A stretch of DNA of 20,888 bases from Neoechinorhynchus agilis (taxonomy: Eukaryota > Animalia > Acanthocephala). A program made the translations under genes and the position numbers. The notes below the pieces were generated by a model, which ran no database searches, was not told the DNA's origin, and saw nothing but the letters and a program-made list of their open reading frames with translations. Within the stretch, counting starts at the first letter, position 1. Each line of letters starts with the position of its first letter. The stretch lies in NCBI GenBank assembly GCA_051530055.1, contig JBMGUZ010000049.1, forward strand, positions 1 to 20,888, read 5' to 3'. Positions 3,001-20,888 of this stretch are shown piece by piece.

Positions 3001-6000
3001 TTCAGGTGTCTTTTATGAACTTCAATCCTTAAACTAAGTGTACAAATTTAAAAAGCCACATCAAACAGTGATTGCAGGTGAATTCAGCGTCAAAAGTAGA
3101 TCTAGAAAAGTTAACACTAGCTAAAATTTATTGACGTTTTAATATCAATAATAAAGCTAGTTTGTCTCAAAATTGAGCAACGCATAACTCACGAACCAAT
3201 ACAGCTATTGCAAATCTGGATGTAGATTTGGAATCAGCGCGTTAAGGTAGACCAGATTAACTGACTTTCTAGACTACAACTTCAATATTCCTAGCGGGAA
3301 TCGCATTATCATATTTGGTCAAAAGTCACAAGAGTCAAAGATCAATAAATTTGCAGGATTATTTTAAATTAGATAACACAATTGAAATCAGCGCATTAGA
3401 TGTGCCGATAATGTTTTATCATTTCCTAACAAGTTACGAGTACTACATATTTAATTCAGGTGTCTTTTATGAACATCAATCCTTAAACTAAGTGTACAAA
3501 TTTAACAAGCCACATCAAACAGTGATTGAAGGTGAATTCAGCGTAAAAAGTAGATCTAGAAAAGTTAATTATAGCTAAAATTTATTGACGTTCTAATATA
3601 AATAATCAAGGTAGTTTGTCTAAAAATTGAACAACGCATAATTCACGAACCATTACAGCTATTGCAAATCTGGATAGAGATTTGGAATCAGCGCGTTAAG
3701 GTAGACCAGATAAACTGACTTGCTAGACTACAACTTACATATTCCTAGCGGGAATCGCATTATCATATTTCGTCAAAAGTCACAAGAGTCAAAGATCACT
3801 AAATTTGCAAGATTCATTTAAATTAGATAACACAATTGAAATCAGCGCATTAAATATGAACAAAATGTTTTATCATTTCCTAACAACTTACGAGTACTAC
3901 ATATTTAATTCAGGTGCATTTTATGAACTTCAATCCTTAAACTAAATGTTAAAATTTAAAAAGCCACATCAAACAGGGATTGCAGGTGAATTCAGCGTCA
4001 AAAGTAGATCTAGAAAAGTTAATTATAGCTAAAATTTATTGACGTTCTAATATCAATAATCAAGGTAGTTTGTCTAAAAATTGAACAACGCATAACTCAC
4101 GAACCATTACAGCTATTGCAAATCTGGATGGAGATTTGAAATCAGCGCGTTAAGATAGACCAGATTAACTGACTTTCTAAACTACAACTGCAATATTCGA
4201 AGCGGGAATCGCATTATCATATTTGGTCAAAAGTCACAAGAGTCAAAGATCACTAAATTTGCAAGATTCATTAAAATTAGATGACACAATTGAAATCAGC
4301 GCATTAGATGTGCTCATAATGTTTTATCATTTCCTAACAACTTACGAGTACTACATATTTAATTCAGGTGCCTTTTATGAACTTCAATCCTTAAACTAAG
4401 TGTAAAAATTCTATAAGTTACATCAAACAGTCGAATATTGCAGGTGAATTCAGAGTTAAAAGTAGATCTAGAAAAGTAAATTATATCTTAAGTTTGTTGA
4501 CGTTTTTATATATATAATATAGGGAGTTTGTCTCAAAATTGAACAACGGATAACTCACGAACCATTACAGCTATTGCAAATCTGGATGGAGATTCTGAAT
4601 CAGCACGTTAAGGTGGACCAGAAAAACTGACTTTCTAAACTACAACTGAAATATTCGAAGCGGGAATCGCATTATCATATTTGGTCAAAAGTCACAAGAG
4701 TCAAAGATCACTAAATTTGCAAGATTCATTTAAATTAGATAACACAATTGAAATCAGCGCATTAGATGTGCTCATAATGTTTTATCATTTCCTAACAACT
4801 TACGAGTACTACATATTTAATTCAGGTGCCTTTTATGAACTTCAATCCTTAAACTAAGTGTAAAAATTTAAAAAGCCACATCAAACAGTGATTGCAGGTG
4901 AATTGAGCGTCAAAGGTACATCTAGAAAAGTTTATTATAGCTAAAATTTATTGACGTTTTAATATCAATAATCAAGGTAGTTTGTCTCAAAATTGAACAA
5001 CGCATAACTCACGAACCATTACAGCTATTGAAAATCCGGATGGAGATTTTGAATCACCGCGTTAAGGTAGACCAGATTAACTTACTTTCTAAACTACAAC
5101 TGCAATATTCGAAGCGGGAATCGCATTATCATATTTGGTCAAAAGTTACAAGAGTCAAAGATCACTAAATTTTCAAGATTCATTAAAATTAGATAACACA
5201 ATTGAAATCAGCGCATTAAATATGAACAAAATGTTTTATCATTTCCTAACAACTTACGAGTACTGCAGATTTAATAAAGGTGTCTTTTATGAACTTCAAT
5301 CCTTAAACTAAGTGTACAAATTTAAAAAGCCACATCAAACAGTTATTTCAGGTGAATTCAGCGTCAAAATTAGATCTAGAAAAGTTATTTATATCTTCAA
5401 TTTATTGAAGTTTTAATATCAATAATCAAGGTAGTTTGTCTCAAAATTGAACAACGCATAACTCACGAACCATTACAGCTATTGCAAATCTGGATGGAGA
5501 TTTTGAATCAGCGCGTTAAGTTAGACCAGATTAACTGACTTTCTAAACTACAACTGCAATATTCGAAGAGGGAATCGCATTAGCATATTTGGTAAAAAGT
5601 CACAGGAGTCAAAGATCACTAAATTTGCAAGATTCATTAAAATTGGATAACACAATTGAAATCAGCGCATAAAATGTGAACAAAATGTTTTATTATTTCT
5701 TAACAACTTACGAGTACAACAGATTTAATTCAGGTGTCTTTTATGAACTTCAATCCTTAAACTAAGTGTAAAAATTCTATAAGCCACATCAAACAGTGAT
5801 TGCAGGTGAATTCAGAGTTAAAAGTAGATCTAGAAAAGTAAATTATATCTTAAATTTATTTACGTTTTTATATATATAATCAAGGGAGTTTGTCTCAAAA
5901 TTGAACAACGGATAACTCACGAACCATTATAGCTATTGCAAATCTGGATGGAGATTCTGAATCAGCACGTTAAGGTGGACCAGAAAAACTGACTTTCTAA

Positions 6001-8784
6001 ACTACAACTTCAATATTCGGAGCGGGAATCGCATTATCATATTTGGTCAAAAGTCACAAGAGTCAAAGATCACTAAATATGCAAGATTCATTGAAATTGG
6101 GTAACACAATTGAAATCAGCGCATTAGATATGCTCAAAATGTTTTATCATTTACTAACAACTTACGAGTACTACATATTTAATTCAGGTGTCTTTTATGA
6201 ACTTCTATCCTTAAACAAAGTGTAAAAATTTAAAAAGCCACATCAAACAGTAATTGCAGGTTAATTCAGCGTCAAATGCAGATCCAGAAAAGTTAATTAT
6301 TTCTTACATTTATTGACGTTTTAATATCAATAATCAAGGTAGTTATTCTACAAATTGAACAACGCATGACTCAAGAACCATTACAGCCATCGCAAATCTA
6401 GATACAGATTTGGAATCAGCGCGTTAAAATGCCCAGATTAACTGACTTCCCAAGCTGCAACTGCAATATTCGAAGCGGAAATCGCATGATCATATTTGGT
6501 CAAAAGTCACAAGAGTCAAAGATCACTAAATTTGAAAGATTCATTACAATTAGATAAATTAATTGAAATCAGCGCATTAGATATGCTCAAAATGTTTCAT
6601 CATTTCGTAACAACTTACGAGTACTACAGATTTAATTCAGGTGTCTTTTATGAACTTCGATCCTTAAACTAAGTGTAAAAATTTAAAAAGTCACATCAAA
6701 CCGTGACTGCAGGTCGATTAAGCGTCAACAGTAGATCTAGAAAAGTTAATTTTATCTTACATTTATTGACGTTATAATATCAATAATCAACGTAGTTTGT
6801 CTGCAAATTGAACGACGCACAACTCAAGAACCATTACAGCCGTCGCAAATCTGGATACAGATTTAGAATCAGCGCGTTAAAATTGACCAGATTAACTGAC
6901 TGCCTAAACTACAACTGCAATATTCGAAGCGGAAATCGCATTATCATATTTGGTAAAAAGTCACAAGGGTCAAAGATCGCTTAATTTGCAAGATTCATTA
7001 CAATTAGATAACTTAATTGAAATCAGCGCATTAGATGTGCTCAAAATGTTTCATCATTTCGTAACAACTTACGAGTACTACAGATTTAATTAAAGTGTCT
7101 TTTATGAACTTCGATCCTTAAACTAAGTGTAAAAATTAAAAAAGTCACATCAAACCGTGATTGCAGGTTAATTAAACGTCAACCGTAGATCTAGAAAAAT
7201 TGATTTTATCTTAAATTTATTGACGTTTTAATATCAATAATCAAGGTAGCTTGTCTACAAATTGAACAACGCATAACTCAAGAACCATTACAGCCATCGC
7301 AAATCTGGATACAGATTTGGAACCAGCGCGTTAAAACGGACAGGATTAACTGACTTCCTAAACTACAGCTGAATTATTCGAAGCGGAAATCGCATGATCA
7401 TATTTGGTGAAAAGTCACAAGAGTAAAAGATCACTAAACTTGCAAGATTCATTAAAATTAGATAACACAATTGAAATCAGCGCATTAGATATGCTCAAAA
7501 TGTTTCATCATTTCGTAACAACTTAAGAGTACTACAGATTTAATTCAGGTGTCTTTTATGAACTTCAATCCTTAAACTCAGTGTAAAAATTAAAAAAGTC
7601 ACATCAAACCGTGATCGCAGGTTAATACAGCGTCAAAAGTAGATCTAGAGAGGTTAATTTTATCTTATATTTATTGACGTTTTAATATCAATAATCAAGG
7701 TAGTTTGTCTCAAAATTGAACAGCGCATAACTCACGAACCATTAGAGCTATTGCAAATCTGGATGTAGATTTGGAATCAGCGCGTTAAGGTAGACCAGAC
7801 TAACTGACCTTCTAAACTACAACTGCAATATTCGAAGCGGGAATCGCATTATCATATTTGGTAAAAAGTCACAAGAGTCAAAGATAACTAAATTTGCAAG
7901 ATTCATAAAAATTAGATAACACAATTGAAATCAGCGTATTAGATATGCTAAAAATGTTTTATCATTTCCTTACAACTTACGAGTACTGCAGATTTAATTC
8001 AGGTGCCTTTTATGAACTTCAATCCTTAAACTAAATGTAAAAATTTAAAAAGCCAAATCAAACAGGGATTGCAGGTGAATTCAGCGTTAAAAGTAGATCT
8101 AGAAAAGTTAATTATATCTTTAATTTATTGACATTTTAATATCAATAATCAAGGTAGTTTGTCTCAAAATTGAACAACGCATAACTCACGAACCATTACA
8201 GCTATTGCAAATCTGGATGGAGATTTGGAATCAGCGCGTGAAGGTAGACTAGACGAACTGACTTTCTAAACTACAACTGCAATATTCGAAGCGGGAATCG
8301 CATTATCATATTTGGTCAAAAGTTACAAGAGTCAAAGATCACTAAGTTTGCAAGATTCATTAAAATTAGGTAACACAATTGAAATCAGCGCATTAGATAT
8401 GCTCAAAATGTTGTATCATTTCGTAACAACTTACGATTACCACAGATTTATTTCAGGTGTCTTTTATCAACTTAAATCCTTAAACTAAGTGTAAAGTCTA
8501 AAAAGCCACATAAAACTGTTATTGCAGGTGAATTCAGCGTCAAAAGTTGATCTAGAAAAGTTAATTTGATCCTAAATTGATTGACGTTTTAATATCAATA
8601 ATCAAGGTAGTTTGTCTCAAAATTGAACAACGAATAACTCAGGAACCATTACAGCTATCGAAAATCTGGATACGGATTTGGAATCAGCGCGTTAAGATGT
8701 ACTAAACTAACTGAATCCCTAAACTACAGCTGCAATATTTGGATCGGAAATCGCATTATAATATTTGGTAAATAGTCACAAGAG
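1..8784. repeat. Tandem satellite array, 454-bp monomer, about 19.3 copies (runs off the left edge)
   Basis: Anchor AACGCATAAC (or a variant) at 1, 455, 909, 1363, 1817, 2271, 2725, 3179, 3633, 4087, 4545, 4999, 5453, 5907, 6361, 6814, 7268, 7722, 8176, 8629; period 453-458, mostly 454. Ends abruptly at AGTCACAAGAG (8784). Confidence 0.98.
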
Positions 8785-10403
8785 CAATCGATTTCGGTTT
8801 TCCTGTATGTTATTCGCTCAAAATCTGGACATATCTCATGAGCACAGGATCTAATTTTTAAGCAGATGGCGTCATGTTTTCGACACAAACAACGAAAAAA
8901 TAAAGCAATAAGACACTGCCGTCGATCTCTGTTTTCCTGTATGTGATTTGCTATAAATCAGAAGATATTGCATCAGCACGTGTTGTAATTTTAAAACTGA
9001 AGACGTCATGGTTTCGATATAAAAAACGAATAAATTGAAGCACAAATTAAACGCTGTAGTCAATTTATGTTTCCGGTATGTTATTGGCTCAAAATCAGAA
9101 TATTTTGCCTTAGCACGCGTTTGAATTTGTAAAACTTCTGAAGTTTTTTGCAGCAAGTAAACGCCCGACGTAATCATGACTTTCTCAATGGTAGAGGAAT
9201 TATGGATTTAACATATAATCGTTGTAAACAACGAAAAAAATAAAGCAGCAATAAAACACTGCCGTCGATTTCTTTTTTCCTTTATATTATTTGCTATAAA
9301 TCATAAGATATTGCATCATCACGTGTTGTAATTTAAAACTGACGACTTCGTAATTTCGATATAAAAAACGAATAAATTAAAGCACCAATAAAACACTTCT
9401 TTTCATTTTTGTTTTCCTATATGTTATTTGCTCGAAATCGAAATGAATTGCATAAGCACGTGTTTTAATTTTTAAAACTCATTACGCTTTTTTCAACGAG
9501 ATAAGTTCGGACGTAACTCTGACTGTCTCGATGGTAGACGCGTTATGGATTTAACGTGTTTTCAATATAAACAACGAAAATAATAAAGCAGCAATAACAT
9601 ACTGCAATCGATTTCGGTTTTCCTGTATGTTATTCGCTCAAAATCAGGAGATATCTCATGAGCACAGGTTCTAATTTTTAAGCAGATGACGTCATGTTTT
9701 CGACACAAACAACGAAAAAAATAAAGCAGCAATAAAACACTGCCGTCGATTTCTGTTTTCCTGTATGTTATTTGCTATAAATGAGAAGATATTGAATGAG
9801 CACCTTTTTCAATTTTTAAACTGATGACGTTTTTGCAACGAGCAAACAGCGGGGGTAACTTGGTTTCGATGTAAACAACGAGAAAAGTAAAGGAGCAATA
9901 ATATACTGCGCTCAATTTTGTTTTCCTGTATGTTATTTGCTCAAAATGAGAAGATATTGCATGGCACGTGTTCTAATCTTTAGGCCGATCGAGTCATGTT
10001 CTCGATGTAAAAAACGAAAAAACCAAAGCACCAATAAAACACCGCAGTCGATCTCTGTTTTCTTGCATGTTATTTGCAATAAATATGAAAATATTGCATG
10101 ATCACGTGTTCTAATTTACAAACTGATGACGTAATGCTTTCAATATAAACTACGAAAAAGAAGCAGCACGGAAAAACTTCGGTGGATTTATGTTTTTCTG
10201 TTTGTCATTTTCTCAAAATCAGAAGACATTGCATGATCATGTGTTTTAATTTTTGAACTGATGACGTCATGTTTTTGTTAAAAACAACGAAAAGACTAAA
10301 GCAAGAATAAAACGCTGCTGTCGATTTCTGTATTTCTGTTTGTTATTTTTTCAAAATTGGAAGATATTGCATGAGTACGTGTTCTTATTTTTAAACTGAT
10401 GAT
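8785..10403. repeat. Diverged tandem array, ~137-bp unit, about 11-12 copies
   Basis: Anchor GTTTTCCTGTATG or a variant at ~8797, 8931, 9069, 9275, 9411, 9617, 9755, 9920, 10057, 10192, 10330. Most spacings are 134-138 bp; three units are expanded (~165 and ~205 bp). Recurrent AAACAACGAAAA, GCACGTG and GACGTCATG. Confidence 0.92.
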
Positions 10404-10448
10404 GGATAAACGGCGGACGTTGCTCATTTTTAAAGTTATTGGATCATT

Positions 10449-10842
10449 GAACGTTTTAAAAGCTTCTCTGCCCGCTAAGAGAGCTTTACTTGAAGTTATC
10501 AACAAGCCTTCCTCTCGTCATAGCTTATATACTAAACCTAACCCTTACATTGGTTTCCTGGAGAGGGGGCACTCTATGTATGCCCAGGTTTTTGACATCG
10601 TGCTGCAATGTAATTTTGCTAGCGTCACAAGGCTCTTTTTATGATACAATTCAATCGAAACAAAACACGTTCAATCAGCTAATGTTCAGAACTTTTTAAC
10701 TTTCAATGATGTAGTTAATTTCACGAAACGTCGAAAACAAATCTAGTCGTCAATTCTAGGCGGGTTCCGAGAGCTTCGACTGACGTCATTTATAAGCACT
10801 CATTCACGTCGTAGCTCATATGCTATGCCTAGCCCTTACTGG
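10449..10842. repeat. Non-tandem block, copy 1 of a dispersed duplication (copy 2 at 20495-20888)
   Basis: Direct match to 20495-20888 at offset 10046; I count 7 substitutions in 394 bp. Confidence 0.97.
10781..10796 (+). promoter_or_regulatory. Possible Pol II core promoter: CRE palindrome directly followed by a TATA-like box
   Basis: TGACGTCA-TT-TATAAG at 10781-10796, identical in copy 2 at 20827-20842. Motif match only. Confidence 0.25.
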
Positions 10843-10941
10843 GATCTCTTCTCCGAGATTAAGTGAACCTTTTTAAGATAAGGTGGCCGCTTGTCATTCT
10901 TCACGGCAAAGATAGGTTGCAAATTTTTGGATGCTGCATCC
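10820..10941 (+). ncRNA. Candidate Sm-class small RNA (spliced-leader-like geometry); 5' end uncertain
   Basis: ATAAG|GT at 10878-10884, GCCG/CGGC stem, Sm-site match AATTTTTGG at 10922-10930, terminal hairpin GGATG-CTG-CATCC at 10929-10941, then a T-run. Does not match any U snRNA I recognise. Confidence 0.2.
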
Positions 10942-11229
10942 TTTTTTAAAACGTAGTGATTTTTAACGTATCTAATTACGGCACCAATCGGTTCACCTGA
11001 TTAAATTTTTTATTCTACCAGCTTTAAAAATCGATTGTAAATTTTCATTTGAAAAAACATTAAAAAACACTTAAGAAGACGATTAAAATCGCAGTTGATT
11101 TAAAAAGACTTTCGAAAAGCACATTACGTGGTTACTCCTCATAAATTATTTTTCGATTAAAAAAACAGTGATAAAATTTTAAACGCGCGCCAAATGATTA
11201 CGCAAGTAATAATTCTTTCGTTTTTTTGC

Positions 11230-12119
11230 ACATTATAAATTGCTGCCCGTTTCCTAAAGCTGCCTCCATGTTCCTGTATCGTTCTTTTTTGTTCGCCTAT
11301 GAAATGAGCGATTTTGGAGCTATGGGATTATGAAGGCATCTTAGCGCGTCCGTGAACGTAAGTAATTTGTTGGAAACGTATTTTTCCCTATCAATGGAGC
11401 CTTCCGATCGATGGAGGATATCGCTCTCCGTCTCCAGAAAGCATCTGTACCTTGAATGGAAGTTATTTTTGCTTTATTCATCTACCACACTAAAGCGTTA
11501 CTTGGAGAGATTAGACTCAGCTCACACTCATCGAAAGCTCCTTCCCCTAAGTTCCTTGTAAGTTTAAGAATCTTCTTTAGTCTGCACCTCCATTGCTCTC
11601 TTTACGTCTGAGATTAGCGGGGCGATGTCGCATGAGGCTTCGAGCTTAACCATTAAGGATGGAATTGCATAGTCGTTTAGAAGGTTAACGTCTTTTAATA
11701 GGGTCGTGTGACTGCTTTGATTTCAGTCCTCGAGAGCTTTCGCAGGGATAAGTACCTGACTCATTAATCCAAACGATGAATTTTTGGCTGTGCGAGATCG
11801 AATTCGAAGAGGAACATCGTCGCTTGGAGTTTGCCCGACAAAATCGCATTGATAGGCAGTCGCTGCGGACCTCAAGATGAAGTGAACTGATAGTTCGTTG
11901 TAATTTTTAGTAGCATCCAGTGTGTCATTTAATGTGAGATTTGCATCAAGAATCATTTTTACTATATGAAGTGAAACAGGGTCCAAGATGCGGTCCTTTA
12001 CTCTCCTCCATTGTGTAGGTTTCTCGAGGACGACAAAGGCGGCGGTCACCAGTACCATTGTTGAATTTTTCTTTAGCTTTATAATTTTGAGGCCGAGACT
12101 TGAAGCCTTGACAAAATCT
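11230..12119 (-). pseudogene. Decayed coding-like sequence, probably further retroelement ORF remnants (thumb/linker-like)
   Basis: Long open stretch (ORF track 11723-12292) plus broken frames such as LLNDYAIPSLMVKL and AFWRRRAISSIDRKAP, which loosely resemble RLE thumb and linker segments. No decisive motif. Confidence 0.35.
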
Positions 12120-12242
12120 GTGGCTGTACGAAACGCATTTTGCTGGATTGAAGGACAATCCAATGCTTCGCAATTCTGTAACCGCAACATCGAGCTTATT
12201 CTGAAGTCCGGCCTTATCCTTACTGACCAACAAAATATCATC
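12120..12242 (-). pseudogene. Reverse transcriptase fragment (catalytic DD through NPAKC)
   Basis: Translates DDILLVSKDKAGLQNKLDVAVTELRSIGLSFNPAKCVSYSH, matching the non-LTR RT pattern ADD-x-LL...GLQ..LD.....L..GL..NPAKC. Confidence 0.75.
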
Positions 12243-12829
12243 TTCGCCATAACTGCTGCCCGTTCCAATGAGGTCTCATAGTAGACCGCCACGTCCTACT
12301 ATATAAACTCGATCATTTATGTTTGTCCTCACAATGAGGTCGGGCTTGTGTAAGTTGCCGCCGTCGTCCATAATGTGATTTTTTCTATCGACGGTATAAC
12401 TGATGCCTCGGATTGAATCTCTTTTGGCGGATTTTGCTTCTTCTGCATTTAATGCGTCTATAAAGACTTTCTCGACGTCGTCGTGTCTTTTAATCATTGC
12501 TTCCGTCGAGAAGTCACACTGATTAATTACGTGCAAGCACGTTTCTGTTTGATGGGCGCAATGGCGACAGGCTTTTGTCCTATTGTTTGAGATCCTTGCC
12601 ATAAGGGCACCAACCTCTAGAAGTTCATCTCGCATTTTTATCAATTCCGTGTATTGCCTGTGATGTCCCTGTCTGTATCTGAATGATAACATTTTTGGGT
12701 CTGCGAATCCGTTGGTAAAGGCCTGATATCCGTTTGCCTGTGTTTTTGCCTCCGCCCATTTTTTTCGTACTCTGCGTTAACGCCGCTTTTGCCTAGATCT
12801 CTCATAAACGATGCAAGCCATTTACTTTC
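12243..12829 (-). pseudogene. C-terminal linker, CCHC knuckle and restriction-like endonuclease fragment
   Basis: After correcting two frameshifts (T7 run at 12759-12765; extra base at 12295/12296) it reads ESKW...EKKWAEAKTQANGYQAF...CRHCAHQTETCLHVINQC...RHDDV...KPDLIV...YIVDVAVYYETSLERAAVMAK, then truncates. Confidence 0.9.
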
Positions 12830-12900
12830 TCATTCGAGAATGCCAATAAAACTGAAGCTATTGAAATCGTTAAAATTGACTGAATTTACATTACTATTTA

Positions 12901-12980
12901 TAAAGAAACAATGATGGTAGTGGTATTTCACCGGCGCGGCTTCCCACCTGTTCTACGCCCATCATGTTTCTTCACAGACT

Positions 12981-13018
<38 letters not shown>

Positions 13019-13025
13019 GTTACTC

Positions 13026-13059
<34 letters not shown>

Positions 13060-13103
13060 GCTGCAGACAGGGACAGTAGGAATCTCAATAATCCATTGAT
13101 GCA

Positions 13104-13135
<32 letters not shown>
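12901..13135 (-). rRNA. 28S rRNA: 28S (LSU) rRNA gene fragment starting exactly at the R2 insertion site; non-functional piece
   Basis: Minus strand reads TAGCCAAATGCCTCGTCATCTAATTAGTGACG...GCGAAACCACAGCCAAGGGAACGGGCTTGG...CAGCGGGGAAAGAAGACCCTGTTGAGCTTGACTCTAGT...GCGCCGGTGAAATACCACTAC; these are conserved eukaryotic LSU core motifs. 235 bp. Confidence 0.97.
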
Positions 13136-13233
13136 GACACAGATTTATTGGTAAAATAAATCACCCTGTATTCGAAATTATATCGATTTTATACTTGATA
13201 TTCTTTTTTTGTTCAATATTAGTTTTTATTCGG

Positions 13234-13404
13234 TTACTTGGTTTGCTTTATCAATTCGTTTTTTTTATTCGTCCCATAAATATGTGGTAAACGGCAAGAT
13301 TTTTCGGCCGCAGCGCGGCACATATTTATTGCACAGTCGGTATTTAAATTGAGGGAACGCAGTCTGCTCAATAATTCCTTGGAAAAAGTTACGAGCTGTA
13401 ACGC
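13234..13404 (-). pseudogene. Probable extreme C-terminal helix of the RLE ORF
   Basis: 57-codon frame ALQLVTFSKELLSRLRSLNLNTDCAINMCRAAAEKSCRLPHIYGTNKKNELIKQTK*. MCRAAAEKSCRLPHIY resembles the terminal helix of R2/NeSL proteins as I remember it, and the position fits (about 100 bp from the 3' junction). Confidence 0.45.
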
Positions 13405-13463
13405 TCAGTCGCTTCGTTTAACCAATCCTGGTTGAAATCTGTCTGAAATCTTAGTAAATGTAT

Positions 13464-14627
13464 TTATTTTTCAAGAAATGCTTTATATCGTGGATGCAAG
13501 GACTTTGTTTTTAGACTGTCGTTAATCGTCTCATATGCAAATTTCGGTGTAAAGATTGCAGATATGCTGGGTGGTTTTTCTGCGTGTTCGGTATAGCTGC
13601 TAGATTCGTGACTTAGACAGTGTACATTAACGCCAGATAAATTCGTGGTAAAATCGCGGGATACTTCGTCGATTAATGCGGTTGAATTGTTGGCATTCAT
13701 TCCCGGTGCATCATCTGCTTCCTCGACTAGGCTGATGGCGGCTTCGGTTTCATCTTCTTCAGGTATGGCATCAAGGACCAGGGACTGAGATAGCGCATTT
13801 ATCCAATTTCTATCGTGGCCAGGAATGATTTTGGTTCTAGATCCGGTCTGACTATTGGTGTCATCGGCTCTTACGGCGGAAGTGCATGACGGGCTGCGAT
13901 GGGACCGTGCACTCGCCGCAAGCGGTGTACTTTGCCTAGAAAGCACCACGTTGTGCGCGAGGTCAGGATTCTCTGCCCTACCATCCAACAAAACATTATT
14001 TTTCTGTGTGAGAGACTCGCCGGCTAGTGATGGAACATCCTGCTTTTTGAGCTACGAGCGCCTAGTACACTGCGTATGGTGAGCTCTGGCAGAGAACACC
14101 TTATCTGAGGGTTGAACCCTACATTCCCTGCACATATACGAGAGGCATTCGACGAGATGTGCAGTGCGCAGGTGATCTTCTAGCGCGTTCCACTGACCCA
14201 AACCGGAGATGTTTATTTTGCAAATCTTACAATGATCTAGGGAAGTGTTCCCAGTGTAAAACGTGACAACGCAACTGGACGTAGAGTGGCTTCCCTGGTC
14301 TTTGGTCTCCTTTTCTATTAGTCCTCTATGAATTGCAGAATTGGTTGCCCTGCATTTTCTGAGATGCGACCCTACGCTTCCAGGAACGGCGTGACGAAAA
14401 CCCTTACACACCTGACAAACCCAAGAGACTGGCCCACGTGAATGACTCTCTCTCATATGGTCCAGAAAGACGCGATGCTTCGTCTTTCCTACAGCTAGAA
14501 ATGGACACAGAGGGCATTGTAAAGGTTTCTCCGGAAATATCCAATATAAAACTTCGATTTGTGAAAGTTCAGAGCTTCCAGACGCCATTGAAGAAAACAT
14601 AGACACTCTCTCACACCAAAACCACAC
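13464..14627 (-). pseudogene. Retroelement ORF N-terminus: four zinc fingers plus a low-complexity linker, one in-frame stop
   Basis: ORFs 14052-14627 and 13464-13991 are in the same frame, separated by a single TAG (14052-14054). Fingers: CPLC..HMRESH, CQVC..HLRKC, CKIC..HLRTAH, CREC..HHTQC. First ATGs are at 14600 and 14588. Confidence 0.85.
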
Positions 14628-15015
14628 TCTGCAAATACTGCAAATTTAACTAAAATTAAGTAAAATTCGATAAAATTTCCTGTGGCGTCACACTCGACAC
14701 GGCAGAAAGCAATAAAAAACTGCGTCTTAAGAGATTCTTCAGCAGGATCGCTCAGAAGTGGCAGAAATTGATTCAGCGGTATCGAAAACCCCAAATCCCG
14801 TCTAAATAGTTCAAATGAAACCTTCTTTTCGAGAGCGAGTTAGGGGAAGGATTAAAAGGCTGTGCTCAGGTGAACGTCTCAATAGTTATGGCTCGGACCT
14901 TTCCAATTCAAATCGTCTTGATACCCAGTGAGAATTTTGTTTACAAACCTGAGGAGTAGAAAATCTGCAAGAATATCGATCGTTTGAGATTTTTCCTGCG
15001 ATGAAAGAAATTTTT

Positions 15016-15083
15016 CCACAATGCTTTGTTTTAATTAACCAGTTGGATTTCCCTTGTCCATACCAGTTCTAGGCCAGCTGTTT
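15016..15083 (-). rRNA. 28S rRNA: 28S rRNA gene fragment from upstream of the R2 site (may extend into variable sequence up to ~15139)
   Basis: Minus strand AAACAGCTGGCCTAGAACTGGTATGGACAAGGGAAATCCAACTGGTTAATTAAAACAAAGCATTGTGG matches the conserved LSU stretch AGAACTGG..CGGAC.AGGGGAATCCGACTGTTTAATTAAAACAAAGCAT. Confidence 0.88.
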
Positions 15084-15139
15084 AACGCAGATCGGATCCC
15101 CGCGCAAGAAGCGAGCGTACCCGCTGGATACGTCGAAAC

Positions 15140-15259
15140 CGTTGTGATGACCGGCCAACGTTCCTCTGGAGACTGCGTATAATTTGAAACAGCACTCTTT
15201 GGCAGACTCGCGGGTTGGACGTTCCCTTCAAATAAACGACGATAATGTTCAACTGTTTC
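15140..15259 (-). pseudogene. Small fragment of the pre-RT region of an RLE retroelement
   Basis: ETVEHYRRLFEGNVQPASLPKSAVSNYTQSPEERWPVITT resembles the Y/W..LF....W.PIT segment that precedes the RT in R2-like proteins. Short, so the assignment is tentative. Confidence 0.5.
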
Positions 15260-15265
15260 TTAACG

Positions 15266-18200
15266 GACTTCCTAAACTACAACTGCAATATTCGAAGCGG
15301 AAATCGCATGATTATATTTGGTCAAAAGTCACAAGAGTCAAAGATCGCATAATTTGCAAAATTCATTAAAATTAGATAACACCATTGAAATCAGCGCATT
15401 AGATATGCTAAAAATGCTTTTGTATTTCGTAACAACTTACGAGTACTACAGATTTAATTCGGGTGTCTTTTATGAACTTCGATCCTTAAACCAAGTGTAA
15501 AAATTAAGAAAAGTCACATTAGACCGTGATTGCAGGTTAATTCAGCGTCAAAAGTGGATCTAGAAAAGTTAATTGTATCTTACATTTATTGACGCTTTAA
15601 TATCAATAATCAAGGTAGTTTGTCTTCAAATTGAACAACGCATAACTCAAGAACCATTACAGCCATCGCAAATCTGGATACAGATTTGGAATCAGCGCGT
15701 TAAAATGGACAAGATTAACTGACTTCCTAAACTACAACAGCAATATTCGAAGCGGAAATCGCATGATCATATTTGGTCAAAAGTCACAAGAGTCAAAGAT
15801 CGCTTAATTTGCAAGATTTATTAAAGTTAGATAACACAATTGAAATCAGCGCATTAGATATGCTAAAAATGCTTTTGTATTTCGTAACAACTTGCGAGTA
15901 CTACTGATTTAATTATGGTGTCTTATATGAACTTCGATCCTTTAACTAAGTGTAAAAATTTAAAAAGCCACATCTTACCGTTATTGCAGGTGAATTCAGC
16001 GTCAAAAGTAGATCTAGAAAAGTTAATTGTATCTTACATTTATTGACGTTTTAATATCAATAATCAAGGTAGTTTGTCTACAAATTGAACAACCCATAAC
16101 TCAAGAACCATTACAGCCATCGCAAATCTGGATACAGGTTTAGAATCAGCGCGTTAAAATGGGCCAGATTAACTGACTTCCTAAACTACAACTGCAATAT
16201 TCGAAGCGGAAATCGCATTATCATATTTGGTCAAAAGTCACAAGAGTCAAACATCGCTTAATTTGCAAGATTCATTTAAATTAGATAACACAATTGAAAT
16301 CAGCGCATTAGATATGCTAAAAATGCTTTTGTATTTCGTAACAACTTACAAGTACTACAGATTTAATTCAGGTGTCTTAATTGAACTTCGATCCTTTAAC
16401 TAAGTGTAAAAATTTAAAAAGCCACATCAAACCGTTATTGGAGGTGAATTCAGCGTCAAAAGTAGATCTAGAAAAGTTAATTTTATCTTAAATTTATTGA
16501 CGTTTTAATATCAATAATATAGGTAGATTGTCTCAAAACTGAACAACGCATAACTAAAGAACCATTACAGCTATCGCAAACCTGGATACAGATTTGGAAT
16601 CAGCGCGTTAAAATGGACCAGATCAACTGACATCATAAACTACAACTGCAATATTCGAAGCGGAAATCGCATTATCATATTTGGTCAAAAGTCACAAGAG
16701 TCAAAGATCGCTTAATTTGCAAGATTCATTAAAATTAGATAACACAATTGAAATCAGTGCATTAGATATGCTAAAAATGCTTTTGTATTTCGTAACAACT
16801 TGCGAGTACTACTGATTTAATTATGGTGCCTTATATGAACTTCGATCCTTTAACTAAGTGTAAAAATTTAAAAAGCCACATCTTACCGTTATTGCAGGTG
16901 AATTCAGCGTCAAACGTAGATCTAGAAAAGTTAATTGTATCTTACATTTATTGACGTTTTAATATCAATAATCAAGGTAGTTTGTCTACAAATTGAACAA
17001 CGCATAACTCAAGAACCATTACAGCCCTCGCAAATCTGGATACAGCTTTGGAATCAGCGCGTTAAAATGGAGAGACTAACTGACTTCCTAAACTACAACT
17101 GCAATATTCGAAGCGGAAATCGCATGATCATATTTGGTAAAAAGTCAAGAGTCAAAGATCGCTTAATTTGCAAGATTCATTAAAATTAGATAACACCATT
17201 GAAATCGGCGCATTAGATATGCTAAAAATGCTTTTGTATTTCGTAACAACTTACGAGTACTACAGATTTAATTCAGGTGTCTTATATGAACTTCGATCCT
17301 TTAACTAAGTGTAAAAATTTAAAAAGCCACATCAAACCGTTATTGGAGGTGAATTCAGCGTAAAAAGTAGATCTAGAAAAGTTAATTTTATCTTAAATTT
17401 ATTGACGTTTTAATATCAATAAATAGGTAGTTTGTCTCAAAACTGAACAACGCATAACTAAAGAACCATTACAGCTATCGCAAACCTGGATACAGATTTG
17501 GAATCAGCGCGTTAAAATGGATAAAAGTCAAAGTAAAGATCCTAATTTGCAAGATTCATTAAAATTGATAAACATTGAAATCGCGCATTAGATATGCTAA
17601 AATGTTTTTATTTCGTAACAACTTACGAGTACTACAGATTTAATTCAGGTGTCTTTATGAACTTCGATCCTTAATCAATAATCAAGGTAGTTTGTCTACA
17701 AATTGAACAACGCATAACTAAAGTACCATTACAGCGATCGCAAATCTGGATACAGATTTGGAATCCGCGCGTTAAAATGGACCAGATCAACTGACATCAT
17801 AAACTACAACTGCAATATTCGAAGCGGAAATCGCATTATCATATTTGGTCAAAAGTCACAATAGTCAAAGATCACTAAATTTGCAAGATTCATTAAAATT
17901 GGATAATACAATTGAAATCAGCGCATTAGATATGCTCAAAATGTTTCATCATTTCGTAACAACTTACGAGTACTACAGATTTAATTCAGGTGTCTTTTAT
18001 GAACTTCGATCCTTAAACTAAGTTAAAAAATTTAAAAAGTCACATCAAACCGTGATTGCAGGTTGATTAAGCGTCAACAGTAGATCTAGAAAAGTTAATT
18101 GTATCTTACATTTATTGACGTTATATTATCAATAATCAAGGTAGTTTGTCTACAAATTGAACAACGCATAACTCAAGAACCATTACAGCTATCGCAAATC

Positions 18201-19957
18201 TGGATACAGATTTAGAATCAGCGCGTTAAAATGGACCAGATTAATTGACTTCCTAAACTACAACTGCAATTTCGAAGCGGAAATCGCATGATCATATTTG
18301 GTCAAAAGTTGAACTATAATTCTTTAACTAAATGTTAAAATTTAAAAAGCCGCATCAAACCGTTATTGCAGGTGAATTCAGCGTCAAAAGTAGATCTAGA
18401 AAAGTTAATTTTATCTTAAATTTATTGACGTTTTAATATCAATAATCAAGGTAGTTTGTCTACAAATTGAACAACGCATAACTAAAGTACCATTACAGCG
18501 ATCGCAAATCTGGATACAGATTTGGAATCCGCGCGTTAAAATGGACCAGATCAACTGACATCATAAACTACAACTGCAATATTCGAAGCGAAAATCGCAT
18601 TATCATATTTGGTCAAAAGTCACAATAGTCAAAGATCACTAAATTTGCAAGATTCATTCAAATTAGATAACAAAATTGAAATCAGCGCATTTGATATGCT
18701 CAAAATGTTTCATCATTTCGTAACAACTTACGAGTACTACAGATTTAATTCAGGTGTCTTTTATGAACTTCGATCCTTAAACTAAGTGTAAAAATTTAAA
18801 AAGTCACATCAAACCGTGATTGCAGGTTAATTAAGCGTATACAGTGGATCTAGAAAAGTTAATTTTATCTTAAATTTATTGACGTTTTAATATCAATAAT
18901 AAAGGTAGTTTGTCTCAAAACTGAACAACTCTGGATACAGATTTGGAATCAGCGCGTTAAAATGGAGCAGATTAACTGACTTCCTAAACTACAACTGCAA
19001 TATTCGAAGCGGAAATCGCATGATCATATTTGGTCAAAAGTCACAAGAGTAAAACATCACTTAATTTGCAAGATTCATTAAAATTAGATAACAAAATTGA
19101 AATCAGCGCATTAGATATGCTCAAAATGTATTATCATTTCGTAACAACTTACGAGTGCCACCGATTTATTTCAGGTGTCTTTTATCAACTTAGATCCTTA
19201 AACTAAGTGTCAAAGTCTAAAGAGCCACATAAAACTGTTATTGCAGGTGAATGCAGCGTCAAAAGTAGATCTAGAAAAGTTAATTTGATCTTAAATTGAT
19301 TGGCGTTTTAATATCAATAATCAAGGTAGTTTGTCTCAAAATTGAACAACGAATAACTCCAGAACCATTAAAGCTATCGCAAATCTGGATACAGATTTGG
19401 AATCAGCGCGTTAGGATGTACTAAACTTACTGACTCTCTAAACTACAGCTTAAATATTTTAATCGGAAATCGCATTATCATATTTGGTAAATAGTCACAA
19501 GAGTTAAAGATCACTAAATATGCAAAATTCATTAAAATTTGATAACACCGTTGAAATCATCTCATTAGATATGCTCAAAATGTTTTATCATTTCGTAACA
19601 ACTTACGAGTACCACAGATTTAATTCAGGTGTCTTTTATCAACTTAAATCCTTAAACTAAGTGTAAAAGTCTAAAAAGCCACATAAAACTGTTATTGCAG
19701 GTGAATTCAGCGTCAAAAATTGATCTAGAAAGGTTAATTTGATCCTAAATTGATTGACGTTTTAATATCAATAATCAAGGTAGTTTGTCTCAAAATTGAA
19801 CAACGAATAACTCAGGAACCATTACAGCTATCGAAAATCTGGATACAGATTTTGAATCAGCGCGTTGAGATGTACTAAACTAACTGAATCTCTAAACTAC
19901 AGCTGCAATATTTGAATCGGAAATCGCATTATAAAATTTGGTAAATAGTCACAAGAG
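15266..19957. repeat. Second 454-bp satellite array, about 11 monomers, several internally deleted
   Basis: Anchors at 15637, 16091, 16545, 16999, 17449, 17709, 18163, 18473, 18927, 19348, 19802; short units of 260, 310 and 421 bp. Same orientation as array 1 and the same end point, AGTCACAAGAG. Confidence 0.98.
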
Positions 19958-20494
19958 CAATCGATTTCGGTTTTCCTTTATGTTATTTGCTCAAAATCAG
20001 AACATATCTCATGAGCACAGGTTCTAATTTTTAAGCAGATGACGTCATGTTTTCGACACAAACAACGAAAGAAATAAAGCAATAAGACTGCCGTCGATCT
20101 CTGTTTTCCTGTACGTCATTTGCTATAAATCAGAAGATATTGCATCAGCACGTGTTGTAATTTTAAAGCTGAAGACGTCATGGTTTCGATATAAAAGACG
20201 AATAAATTGAAGCACAAATTAAACGCTGTAGTCAATTTATGTTTCCGGCATGTTATTGGCTCAAAATCAGAATATTTTGCTTAAGCACGCGTTTGAATTT
20301 GTAAAACTCATTACGCTTTTTTCAACGAGATAAGTTCGGACGTAACTCTGACTGTCTCGATGGTAGACGCGTTATGGATTTAACGTGTTTTCAATATAAA
20401 AAACGAAAATAATAAAGCAGCAATAACATACTGCAGTCGAATTCTGTTTTCCTTTGTGTTATTCGCTCCAAATCAGGAGATATCTCATGAGCAC
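19958..20494. repeat. Second, shortened ~137-bp array (about 3.5 units)
   Basis: Anchors at ~19970, 20103, 20241, 20446. Matches 8785-~9135, then ~9475-9667. Confidence 0.93.
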
Positions 20495-20888
20495 GAACGT
20501 TTTAAAAGCTTCTCTGCCCGCTAAGAGAGCTTTACTTGAAGTTATCAACAAGCCTTCCTCTCGTCATAGCTTATATACTAAACCTAACCCTTACATTGGT
20601 TTCCTGGAGAGGGGGCACTCTATGTATGCCCAGGTTTTTGACATCGTGCTGCAATGTAATTTTGCTAGCGTCACAAGGCTCTTTTTATGATACAATTCAA
20701 TCGAAACAAAACACGTTCAATCAGCTAATGTTCAGCACTTTTTAACTTTCAATGATGTAGTTAATTTCACGAAACGTCGACAACCAATCTAGTCATCAAT
20801 TCTTAGCGGGTTCCAAGAGCTTCGACTGACGTCATTTATAAGCACTCATTCACGTCGTAGCTCATATGCTATGCCTAGCCCTTACTGG
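20495..20888. repeat. Non-tandem block, copy 2 (runs off the right edge)
   Basis: Matches 10449-10842. Confidence 0.97.

Follow-up and report, generated by a model that had tools for sequence, protein, structure and literature searches.

R2 proteins are under engineering for site-specific gene insertion, and in R2 lineage A a single ZnF3:ZnF2 pair binds at -40 to -21 weakly. Utopia elements classically target U2 snRNA genes. In the latest survey of R2, ZnF1-Myb is treated as the hallmark of these elements (PMC13188248), and it has been found to be both necessary and sufficient for targeting in the two major R2 lineages; in lineage A, ZF1-Myb is essential and ZF3-2 is dispensable (PMC11204384). 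Myb-less elements of sponges have been reported outside 28S (PMC13188248, PMC13580325), and the R9 element of bdelloid rotifers (Gladyshev and Arkhipova 2009, cited in PMC5035012) is described as R2-derived and 28S-specific, with an odd spacing of strand breaks and a very long target duplication. A Myb-less element at the R2 site such as the one reported here is described in none of the three R2 surveys consulted (PMC13188248, PMC13580325, PMC5035012).

Here we analysed a window of 20,888 nucleotides that spans an entire Neoechinorhynchus agilis contig and carries on its minus strand, at 15018-13136, an element of ~1.9 kb whose parts are listed in Table 1. The best explanation of the whole, to which we assign a probability of about 0.8, is that the element is a dead, internally deleted copy belonging to an Acanthocephala family of R2-type non-LTR retrotransposons with a restriction-like endonuclease (RLE).

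Table 1. Parts of the element, its 28S flanks and the pieces next to it in the window, with positions counted over the full 20,888 nt.
Feature	Position	Strand	Remarks
Upstream 28S fragment	15019..15137	-	Ends ...TTAATTAAAACAAAGCATTG; about Rfam LSU model position 2163, read directly from sequence
Element 5' UTR	14628..15018	-	Blocks common to sister-family 5' UTRs: GAGCACAGCC, AAGACGCAGTTTTTT, GTGACG (alignment)
N-terminal ORF piece with four zinc fingers (14516-14067)	14055..14627	-	C2H2, CCHC, C2H2, CCHC
In-frame stop TAG	14052..14054	-	Absent from most related copies
Acidic, Ser-rich linker, ~195 codons	13467..14051	-	Closes with ..FTPKFAYETINDSLKTKSLHPRYKAFLEK, which leads into the OTU-like domain and is conserved
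Second in-frame stop TAA (13466-13464), then first helix of OTU-like region (..DFNQDWLNEATERYSS)	13392..13466	-	Truncated at 13392
Last ~50 ORF codons (..LSRLRSLNLNTDCAINMCRAAAEKS..) and stop	13234..13391	-	Joined directly to 13392
3' UTR, 98 nt	13136..13233	-	AATAAAT at 13149-13143, seven nt from end
Downstream 28S fragment	12890..13135	-	Starts at R2 nick (TAGCCAAATGCC...); Rfam LSU_rRNA_eukarya E 4.5e-36, model ~2283-2530
Adjacent scrambled pieces from a different family of this kind, outside the element	11726..12692	-	CCHC+RLE 12692-12279, RT palm fragment 12233-11949, OTU-like piece 12109-11759

The 3' end of the element at 13136 reads ...AATAAATCTGTGTC / ...ccaataaatctgtgtc and is followed directly by TAGCCAAATGCC (minus strand), and in the Rfam LSU alignment the window from 13135 downward corresponds to the model from position ~2283 onward (UAGCCAAAUGCCUCGUCAUCUAAUUAGUGACG). 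The downstream 28S flank of a Myb-bearing R2 control (L009) is the same as that of the four-finger elements; with this agreement and that of the Rfam alignment, the claim of an earlier note, made from the letters of the window, that the element sits at the exact R2 site is borne out for the 13136/13135 junction. Ten 3' junctions at this site were read in three assemblies (N. agilis, Pomphorhynchus laevis and GCA_028748465.1), and in all ten four-finger elements an AATAAAT motif lies at the same distance (6-7 nt) from the 3' end. The junction of the L006 element is followed by TAGCGAAATGCC. One of the related elements (L001a) has 28S on both flanks, with its 5' junction at -10. The family uses the exact R2 bottom-strand nick, immediately before TAGCCAAATGCC, on junctions from scrambled, partly non-rDNA arrays, in which every copy read sits; the WGS read set had been filtered of reads resembling human 28S. 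The U2 snRNA and spliced-leader targets of Utopia and NeSL were found at none of the junctions read, and Rfam gave no snRNA match in the window and neither an HDV-like ribozyme nor an R2 3' element in the window, L006, L007 or L008. The 5' junction of the window copy lies not at the R2 site but ~120 nt upstream of the nick.

The individual parts of the window copy could be matched to related loci. The upstream 28S fragment is 95% identical to L003 7393-7512, and past 15019, 27 WGS reads run on into true 28S; the 5' UTR shares 70% nucleotide identity with L004 6316-6502, the linker has matches in L001, L002, L003 and L004 that are spaced from the fingers as expected, and the stretch ending at 13392 is colinear with L004 (..EIDKVFIDAAARRYEQ). 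Beyond 13392, other copies continue as HLHCGKNTTS (loose ends in X1, X2 and X3); in the window, an internal deletion at 13392/13391 removed the OTU-like domain, the reverse transcriptase (RT), the CCHC knuckle and the RLE. At position 14054, 27 of 32 WGS reads have another base, the codon then being AAG, and L004 has Lys there; indel variants of the linker (13543-13642 and 13619-13689) are also present in reads. With two in-frame stops and the deletion, the window copy is immobile by its own protein. It lies outside functional rDNA, in a scrambled block of rDNA and retroelement pieces embedded in a 454-bp satellite. That the block might be a satellite-only artefact was rejected because its part 13149-8800 recurs on two other contigs (L002 and L003) at 92-96% identity. 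In an RNA-labelled contig that skips 422 nt (14600-15023), an intron reading was likewise rejected, the ends not being GT..AG and one side comprising only 25 letters.

The four fingers of the ORF (14627-14055) read CPLC..H..H, CQVC..H..C, CKIC..H..H and CREC..H..C, the first Cys codon starting at 14516 and the last ending at 14067. The order C2H2-CCHC-C2H2-CCHC had been noticed earlier at exactly these coordinates, and its Cys/His columns are invariant or nearly so in 10-11 relatives. A profile built from 16 lineage-A-type ZnF3:ZnF2 pairs matched both pairs of the window (domain E 4e-7 and 9.6e-7; best reversed decoy 0.088). The predicted structure of the fingers (m856f463305cc) has a pLDDT of 84, and one modelled pair superposes on that of R2Tg (9dou) with 1.8 A over 68 columns, the Foldseek E being weak (0.058). 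The co-folded pair of ZnF3 (CCHH) and ZnF2 (CCHC) by which R2 lineage A is recognised is present. Since each finger pair matches ZnF3:ZnF2 of lineage A, the N-terminus is not wholly ‘non-R2’, as it had been called; the accompanying suggestion that such paired fingers are typical of Utopia/NeSL elements holds in so far as the same pair fold occurs in sponge Utopia (PMC13580325), but the pairs also match R2 lineage A. A poorly supported tree of the finger pairs alone (66 columns) suggests no more than that pair 1 is shared across species and that pair 2 is as well. A search of 1.84 billion representative proteins returned the four-finger module from N. agilis, Pomphorhynchus laevis and a handful of further contigs alone, and a search of the ESM Atlas gave weak leads only, namely clusters of zf-C2H2 and, at 0.73, an OTU family.

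The deletion at 13392/13391 also removed the place where a Myb would adjoin the RT, so the absence of Myb from the window copy proves nothing alone. Full-length copies, whose retrieval the earlier note had proposed, were found with intact frames in L001 (12419-16414, L001b), where the open 1332-codon frame has YADD, CRHC..H..C and KPD..D intact, and in L006 (1396 codons, both finger pairs); both are four-finger and without Myb, and broken copies of the same kind occur in L003, L004 and Pomphorhynchus laevis. The order in all relatives is two finger pairs, an acidic linker (150-190 residues in full-length members), an OTU-fold domain, an R2-like RT, CCHC and a restriction-like endonuclease. L001b and L006 thus each hold in a single ORF the R2-type RT, CCHC knuckle and PD-(D/E)xK endonuclease that are deleted in the window copy. 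The best solved relatives of the L001 protein are R2Tg (E 2.8e-77), Platysternon R2 (2.7e-72) and R2Bm (6.9e-32), which it matches from RT(-1) to the endonuclease. Pfam scans miss Myb even in genuine R2 proteins, which makes a Pfam search for Myb invalid as a test, and a ZnF1-Myb profile with positive controls was therefore used. This home-made HMM, for which 14 R2 proteins were used, recognises ~45 further R2 proteins, the weakest match being to a ctenophore protein at 1.4e-8, and had no match in any frame of the window or of L001-L007. The ~200 residues without Myb that had been remarked past the fingers of the window copy proved to be 195 codons, up to the TAA, with no match to Pfam or to the ZnF1-Myb profile. 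The N-terminal ZnF1 and Myb that mark R2 are absent from the acanthocephalan frames, and the family is without Myb in its full-length copies; the HMM or structure check that had been suggested for the N-terminus revealed, as the sole folded domain between fingers and RT, an OTU fold that runs straight into the RT(-1) motif RALYF.

The OTU-like domain was modelled with a pLDDT of 68 overall and 80-90 in the core, and the best 50 Foldseek matches of the model were all OTU domains, the top one being OTUD3 (4bou; E 2.5e-5, TM (target) 0.69). Pfam OTU was not detected by sequence, only the fold search revealing it. OTU deubiquitinases have a catalytic His and, at the head of the first core helix, a catalytic Cys; in an alignment of eight copies, no Cys or His is conserved: the only invariant columns are G, V, P and V, and the DGNC position reads TATM, PTQA, SRMS, SNLT and similar (TSAQ in P0026). 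On the predicted fold, this is an OTU-fold domain without catalytic Cys/His, hence called catalytically dead. A literature search returned no report of an OTU fold in RLE elements.

In the RT tree, the acanthocephalan rows form one deep clade (100/100), and the group formed by this clade and R2 is split from the NeSL-like Ulp1 proteins at 100/99. These trees are without labelled Utopia, R4, HERO, CRE or R9 rows, and broken copies enter them with an X marking every break, without any repair or consensus building. A Myb-less tree neighbour (P0042) was set aside, its N-terminus being unrelated and its flanks uninformative. We considered whether the family could be a separate, Utopia-like RLE lineage that never had ZnF1-Myb and reached the R2 nick site by convergence, and regard this as unlikely. 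It would agree with the maximum-likelihood tree, in which the clade lies, weakly (59/92), outside the Myb-bearing R2 crown (45 Myb-type rows), with a quick RT-only tree that places it outside the Myb-type rows at 93 SH-aLRT, and with the cost of forcing it to group with lineage-A-type fish R2, which is 7.3 lnL units (p-AU 0.057, borderline acceptable); sponge Utopia, moreover, has a ZnF3:2-like pair without Myb, and Myb-less relatives are classed as Utopia (PMC13188248, PMC13580325). However, when the RT-RLE region is searched, the top ~40 database matches after the family's own clade are R2, with Myb in nearly all whose N-terminus is complete, the match to R2Tg extends over the whole span given above, the NeSL-like proteins stand well apart, and a bottom-strand nick at the same nucleotide as R2 is unlikely by chance. 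The exclusion from the R2 crown is itself weakly supported and the nesting with lineage-A-type fish R2 only borderline, so that an R2 that lost ZnF1-Myb is not demonstrated by the trees. What the earlier note had proposed, an undescribed RLE lineage that is either convergent or an R2 with a swapped module, stands as regards the lineage, which is Myb-less, at the R2 site and absent from the surveys, whereas the choice between the two origins is not decided by the trees. The same note had named full-length copies with a Myb and a position inside R2 as evidence against its proposal; Myb proved absent, and the clade lies outside the Myb-type crown at 59/92.

It had also been considered that fingers and 3' UTR might come from different elements fused in this mosaic. 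The window element could indeed be a chimera in which the 5' UTR, fingers and linker derive from one family (here W, for window) and the last ~50 codons and 3' UTR from a sister family, joined by a deletion running from one element of the scrambled array into its neighbour or by template switching in reverse transcription, and we consider this an appreciable possibility, if one below even odds. The 3' segment most resembles the L002 tail (identity in 54 of 66 nt; tail peptide FSK.LL.RLRSLNLNT.CAINM), and its AATAAAT-CTGTGTC end type groups with L002 and L001a (TTGTGAC), whereas the fingers are nearest to L004 6316-10712 (77% nt), which ends in GAAGCCC and has a tail only ~45% identical. Read depth over 13171-13365 (~20) is half of that just upstream of the breakpoint, and the arrays often hold elements in tandem or inverted arrangement. 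Yet none of the copies compared was full-length and at least 90% identical to the 5' part of the window copy, L004 shows 23% nucleotide divergence, and evolution is fast in tails and UTRs. As the two halves belong to one four-finger, R2-site kind, the conclusion for the family is the same under deletion or chimera; the suspected mosaic holds in part, for this copy, in that the 3' segment is nearest another family's tail, that family being four-finger and R2-site too. Very improbable, in our view, is that the deleted copy is a non-autonomous, SIDE-like derivative amplified in trans by full-length elements: it has kept what recognition requires, namely the 5' UTR, the 3' UTR and the terminal AATAAAT, and RNA-labelled contigs match it exactly over 13248-13687, but the labelling of those runs as ‘RNA’ is guesswork and they may contain carried-over DNA, its stops are private, it lies in a segmentally repeated block, and WGS depth is lowest over the 3' segment (~20 over the 3' UTR, compared to 40-200 over the fingers) and over the deletion junction (~20 reads; one 580-nt DNA contig), which fits one or two copies.

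A bolder reading of the family as a whole, held at a confidence just short of an even chance, is that of a Myb-less R2-site lineage, present in at least two classes of Acanthocephala, that nicks the canonical target by means of a doubled ZnF3:ZnF2 and a recruited, dead OTU domain beside the RT. Under the best explanation given above, the elements would insert by target-primed reverse transcription, as R2 does, with the doubled finger pair, through putative binding, providing the upstream target recognition that is the role of ZnF1-Myb in other R2; the dead OTU domain, beside the N-terminal extension of the RT, may aid target recognition. Within the bolder reading, the second-strand break may lie ~120 bp upstream, the ZnF3:2 pair, hitherto an accessory of unclear function, would be a self-sufficient target-recognition device, and it could mark the ancestral state that gave rise to lineage A. 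A natural lineage at the same 28S nucleotide without ZnF1-Myb is a ready-made test of the ZnF3:2 pair alone; the family offers a second solution to R2-site recognition, bears on the origin of lineage A and its finger pair, and shows a non-LTR retrotransposon protein that has recruited an OTU fold which has lost its catalytic residues. The window copy is only a decayed relic, and the value lies in the family with its open frames in L001 and L006.

Among the known systems, NeSL-1-type elements with Ulp1 (P0077, P0082, P0087) are likewise RLE non-LTR elements with a domain of cysteine-protease fold N-terminal to the RT; theirs is an Ulp1 fold, presumably active, and their targets differ, whereas the family has an OTU fold without catalytic residues. 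The hosts of R9 are the closest relatives of acanthocephalans (Syndermata), and R9 is described as R2-derived and 28S-specific; it uses another 28S site, whereas the family has an R2-site 3' junction and a recurrent ~120-nt target deletion instead of a duplication. Utopia and the Myb-less R2-homologues of sponges (Hassan et al. 2026, PMC13188248; review PMC13580325), compared here by description, are also Myb-less RLE elements with a tandem ZnF3:2-like pair, and the family differs from them in its exact R2 site and in its OTU-fold domain, none being reported for them (PMC13188248, PMC13580325). R2 lineage A (R2Tg of zebra finch, PDB 9dou and 9nl3; Platysternon R2, 9nl2) shares with the family a single ORF, the same 28S nick, a ZnF3:ZnF2-type pair and an RT with N-terminal extension, thumb, CCHC knuckle and restriction-like endonuclease that align end to end (E 2.8e-77). 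Unlike lineage A, the family has no ZnF1 and no Myb, carries the ZnF3:2 pair twice and a dead OTU-fold domain directly before the RT, bears AATAAAT 6-7 nt from its 3' end and forms a deep separate branch in RT trees.

Aligned to the window, the Rfam LSU model runs from position 13135 downward to ...UAGCCAAAUGCCUCGUCAUCUAAUUAGUGACG... (E 4.5e-36), directly after the element's end, ...CCAATAAATCTGTGTC, at 13136; the 3' junction at the R2 site claimed in an earlier note, made from the sequence alone, is thus upheld, and a Myb-bearing R2 control (L009) has the identical 28S flank after its own 3' end. The finger order and positions described in that note were recovered in one ORF with CPLC...H....H, CQVC...H...C, CKIC...H....H and CREC...H...C, as was the finger-less tail, in which the frame runs on for 195 codons past an in-frame TAG and no Pfam family was matched. 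The nearest relative obtained for this copy is an element on record L004, whose nucleotides are 77% identical in the finger region and 70% identical across a portion of the 5' UTR, and which reads fingers, acidic linker, a conserved domain of ~200 residues, RT, CCHC/endonuclease, 3' UTR and 28S. Colinearity between the window and this element extends as far as ...HPRYKAFLEK*...DFNQDWLNEATERYSS (L004: HPRYRAFLESE...EIDKVFIDAAARRYEQ) and then ends; the final ~50 ORF codons (..LSRLRSLNLNTDCAINMCRAAAEKS..) and a 98-nt 3' UTR follow, so that the window copy is without conserved domain, RT and endonuclease. Related copies continue at this break, where a loose end is present in three contig runs, one of DNA and two labelled RNA; the consensus of that end, when translated, gives HLHCGKNTTS, the counterpart in an intact copy being YLKCGKGVIQ. 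Of the two in-frame stops in the window copy, the first, the TAG, is mostly private (27 of 32 reads have a base giving a Lys codon), and read depth is ~20 over the 3' segment compared to 40-200 over the fingers, which fits one or two copies of the window's derivative. The NCBI gene model ACOME3_010691, which splices round an in-frame stop and starts in a different frame, is artefactual, having been annotated on a dead retroelement. Since the window copy is internally deleted, its missing Myb is uninformative alone and the question passes to full-length relatives. Within the acidic linker, most reads omit 69 nt (52 reads) and a minority swap 98 nt for 18 other letters, so related copies differ in length there. 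Related copies also occur in RNA-labelled contigs (the label is a guess; read/contig runs X2 and X3), one of 3906 nt and one of 1046 nt, and further such contigs are identical to the window locus; these contigs represent either transcription or DNA carry-over.

The window is one complete N. agilis contig in which a foreign block lies between satellite arrays. Because much of this block is found again on two further N. agilis records, L002 and L003, we regard it as a segmentally repeated unit and not functional rDNA. The retroelement/28S block within the satellite repeats on these records at 87-96% identity, and the subrepeat array that adjoins it resembles rDNA intergenic spacer.

Coordinates of features in the window and in the comparison records
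Feature	Record	Position	Remark
454-bp satellite	window	1-8800, 15280-20888	both ends
Foreign block	window	~8800 to 15280	minus strand: 28S piece; element under study; second 28S piece beginning at R2 site; scrambled other retroelement (endonuclease, RT fragment, OTU-like piece); ~137-bp subrepeat array
~137-bp subrepeat array	window	8800-10400	
Repeated segment	window	13149-8800	92-96% identity on L002, L003
Finger ORF	window	14627-14055	outermost Cys codons 14516, 14067
First in-frame stop	window	14054-14052	TAG
End of colinearity with L004	window	13392/13391	tail from 13391
ACOME3_010691	window	14404-14544 / 13467-14400	
Linker deletion in reads	window	13619-13689	omitted: 13620-13688
Linker replacement in reads	window	13543-13642	
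Related copies, RNA-labelled contigs	window	13892-14145	
Identical RNA-labelled contigs	window	13248-13687	
5'-truncated copy, RNA-labelled contig	window	15023->14600	joint
5' UTR with invariant blocks	window	14628-15018	
	L002	7525-8000	
	L003	7513-8000	
	L004	6250-6716	
5' break in 28S	window	15019/15018	
	L003	7512/7513	
GCATTG junction	L002	~7524	
AATAAAT before 28S junction	window	13143-13149	
	L001	11744, 16591	
	L002	10762, 6663(-)	
	L003	3581, 12522	
	L004	3216(-)	
	L005	5791	
	L006	4681	
Relatives	L001	12419-16414 (+)	5'-truncated, open frame
	L004	6316-10712	nearest relative
	L006	417-4604 (+)	open frame; also L007

A search of 1.84 billion representative proteins with the finger ORF gave 14 matches, every named one from N. 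agilis or Pomphorhynchus laevis. A 5'-truncated copy on L001 holds an open frame of 1332 codons with YADD, CRHC...H...C and KPD...D intact, and contigs L006 and L007, from two assemblies (GCA_028748465.1 and GCA_028748445.1), hold an open frame of 1396 codons with both finger pairs, intact YADD, CCHC and endonuclease motifs and a 28S junction at which ...GAATAAATTGGTTC meets TAGCGAAATGCC. The RT of the latter is sister to that of the P. laevis copy, and the identical part order is present in broken copies of at least four more N. agilis families and in one P. laevis copy. Judged by these open frames, the family may still be active. The window copy itself could be a fusion of two sister families, brought about by template switching or by loss of the DNA between two adjacent elements, a reading to which we give somewhat less than an even chance. 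Its 3' segment most resembles the L002 element's tail, with which it shares 54 of 66 nt, and in terminal heptamer type it goes with L002 and with L001a, one of two elements on L001; its fingers are nearest the L004 copy, in which the tail and end differ. Both candidate halves are of the four-finger kind found at the R2 site, and in L001a, L003 and L006 a single element combines this architecture with the junctions. The objection that fingers and 3' UTR come from different elements therefore touches the window copy only, through its L002-like tail.

All ten readable 3' junctions, from six loci in three assemblies, enter 28S at TAGCC (in one case TAGCG) after AATAAAT and 6-7 further bases. This motif, absent from the Myb-type control L009, could be a polyadenylation-like signal or a portion of the 3' end bound by RT. 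WGS reads over the site contain at least three more 3'-end types with the motif (211, 69 and 69 reads), compared with ~20 reads for the window type. At the other end, L001a is flanked by 28S on both sides and its 5' junction lies 10 nt upstream of the nick (...GTAACTATGACT), an ordinary small target deletion as in R2. In the window element and in the element family of L003 and L004, which are separate families, the 28S sequence is broken at ...AAAGCATTG, which lies ~120 nt upstream of the R2 nick. L002 retains a junction of GCATTG to the 5' end of the L003/L004 family, preceded by sequence with at most a weak likeness to 28S. In one RNA-labelled contig a 5'-truncated copy is attached to that same ...AAAGCATTG point of 28S, and 27 reads run on beyond this point in true 28S. 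The recurrence of this break is possibly due to a fixed second-strand break or to inheritance of an already deleted pseudo-target in the repeated unit. The 5' UTRs share invariant short blocks (GGTCYGAGC, GAGCACAGCC, GGGGTT, AAGACGCAGTTTTTT and GTGACG), though the families are only ~43% protein-identical; nothing in Rfam matched, and the blocks themselves suggest RNA structure, for instance that of a ribozyme or translation element.

Since Pfam is blind to Myb even in genuine R2 proteins, we trained a dedicated ZnF1-Myb profile on 14 R2 proteins with CCHH-CCHC-CCHH fingers. It detects the module in ~45 R2 proteins outside the training set, among them one from a ctenophore (E 1.4e-8) and lineage-D-type proteins with a single finger, and is silent in all reading frames of the window and L001-L007 (best matches E >2, in tiny ORFs), which bears out the earlier claim that Myb is missing. 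The domain between linker and RT, modelled from an 8-copy alignment (pLDDT 68 overall, 80-90 in the core), returned only OTU domains among its 50 best structural matches, first OTUD3 (E 2.5e-5, target TM 0.69); no Cys or His is conserved at the catalytic positions in this alignment. As the OTU-like domain abuts the RT N-terminal motif RALYF, there is no space for a Myb.

From RT to endonuclease, an intact copy matches R2Tg, the zebra finch R2 (E 2.8e-77), Platysternon R2 (2.7e-72), R2Bm (6.9e-32) and L1 ORF2p (~1e-16), and a search of 5.8 billion proteins returned its own clade and then R2 proteins, almost all of which carry ZnF1-Myb if their N-terminus is complete. In a quick tree of 85 RT rows the acanthocephalan clade (99%) fell outside a 67-row R2 crown (support 93). 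In a more careful tree of RT and RLE together (56 rows and 758 columns; root placed on Ulp1-bearing NeSL-like proteins), the clade (100/100) and R2 together split from the NeSL-like rows (100/99), and the base of R2 is a polytomy. On these alignments, which are without labelled Utopia, R4, HERO, CRE and R9, the acanthocephalan lineage is deep and distinct. The earlier note had offered a new RLE lineage or a remodelled R2; the distinct clade and its Myb-less full copies stand, and the lineage may be either an R2 that lost ZnF1-Myb or a sister that never had it. The Myb-type rows fall on one side of a branch supported 59/92 only, and a constraint uniting the clade with lineage-A-type fish R2 costs 7.3 log-likelihood units (p-AU 0.057). 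Our literature search found no R2 or other 28S-specific element reported in Acanthocephala and no OTU domain reported in RLE retrotransposons, and a 2026 survey (PMC13188248) and a review (PMC13580325) mention neither acanthocephalans nor R2-site Myb-less elements.

By homology, insertion would start from a nick made in the bottom strand at the R2 site and proceed by target-primed reverse transcription. High-affinity binding in lineage A comes from ZF1-Myb; ZF3-2 alone binds -40 to -21 at micromolar concentration only, is not required for in vitro TPRT and affects second-strand nicking and the position of the 5' junction (PMC11204384). With ZF1-Myb missing and the pair doubled, we propose that the two pairs would jointly provide upstream target recognition in the acanthocephalan elements, perhaps assisted by the catalytically dead OTU domain predicted beside the RT N-terminal extension.

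Contrary to the earlier note, the N-terminus is not foreign to R2: a ZnF3:ZnF2 pair profile built from 16 lineage-A-type R2 proteins matches both window pairs along the entire profile (domain E 4e-7 and 9.6e-7; 1.2e-12 for the whole sequence) and both pairs in every relative (top reversed-sequence decoy 0.088). ZnF3 (CCHH) and ZnF2 (CCHC) have been described as a co-folded pair specific to lineage A, and sponge Utopia elements, which have no Myb, are reported to possess a structurally similar pair (PMC13188248, PMC13580325); the likeness to Utopia drawn earlier therefore holds in part, but the pair is equally a feature of R2 lineage A. In the four-finger model (pLDDT 84, pTM 0.73), 68 columns superpose on R2Tg at 1.8 A, with a weak Foldseek E-value, whereas superposition with generic tandem-finger proteins gives 13-19 A.
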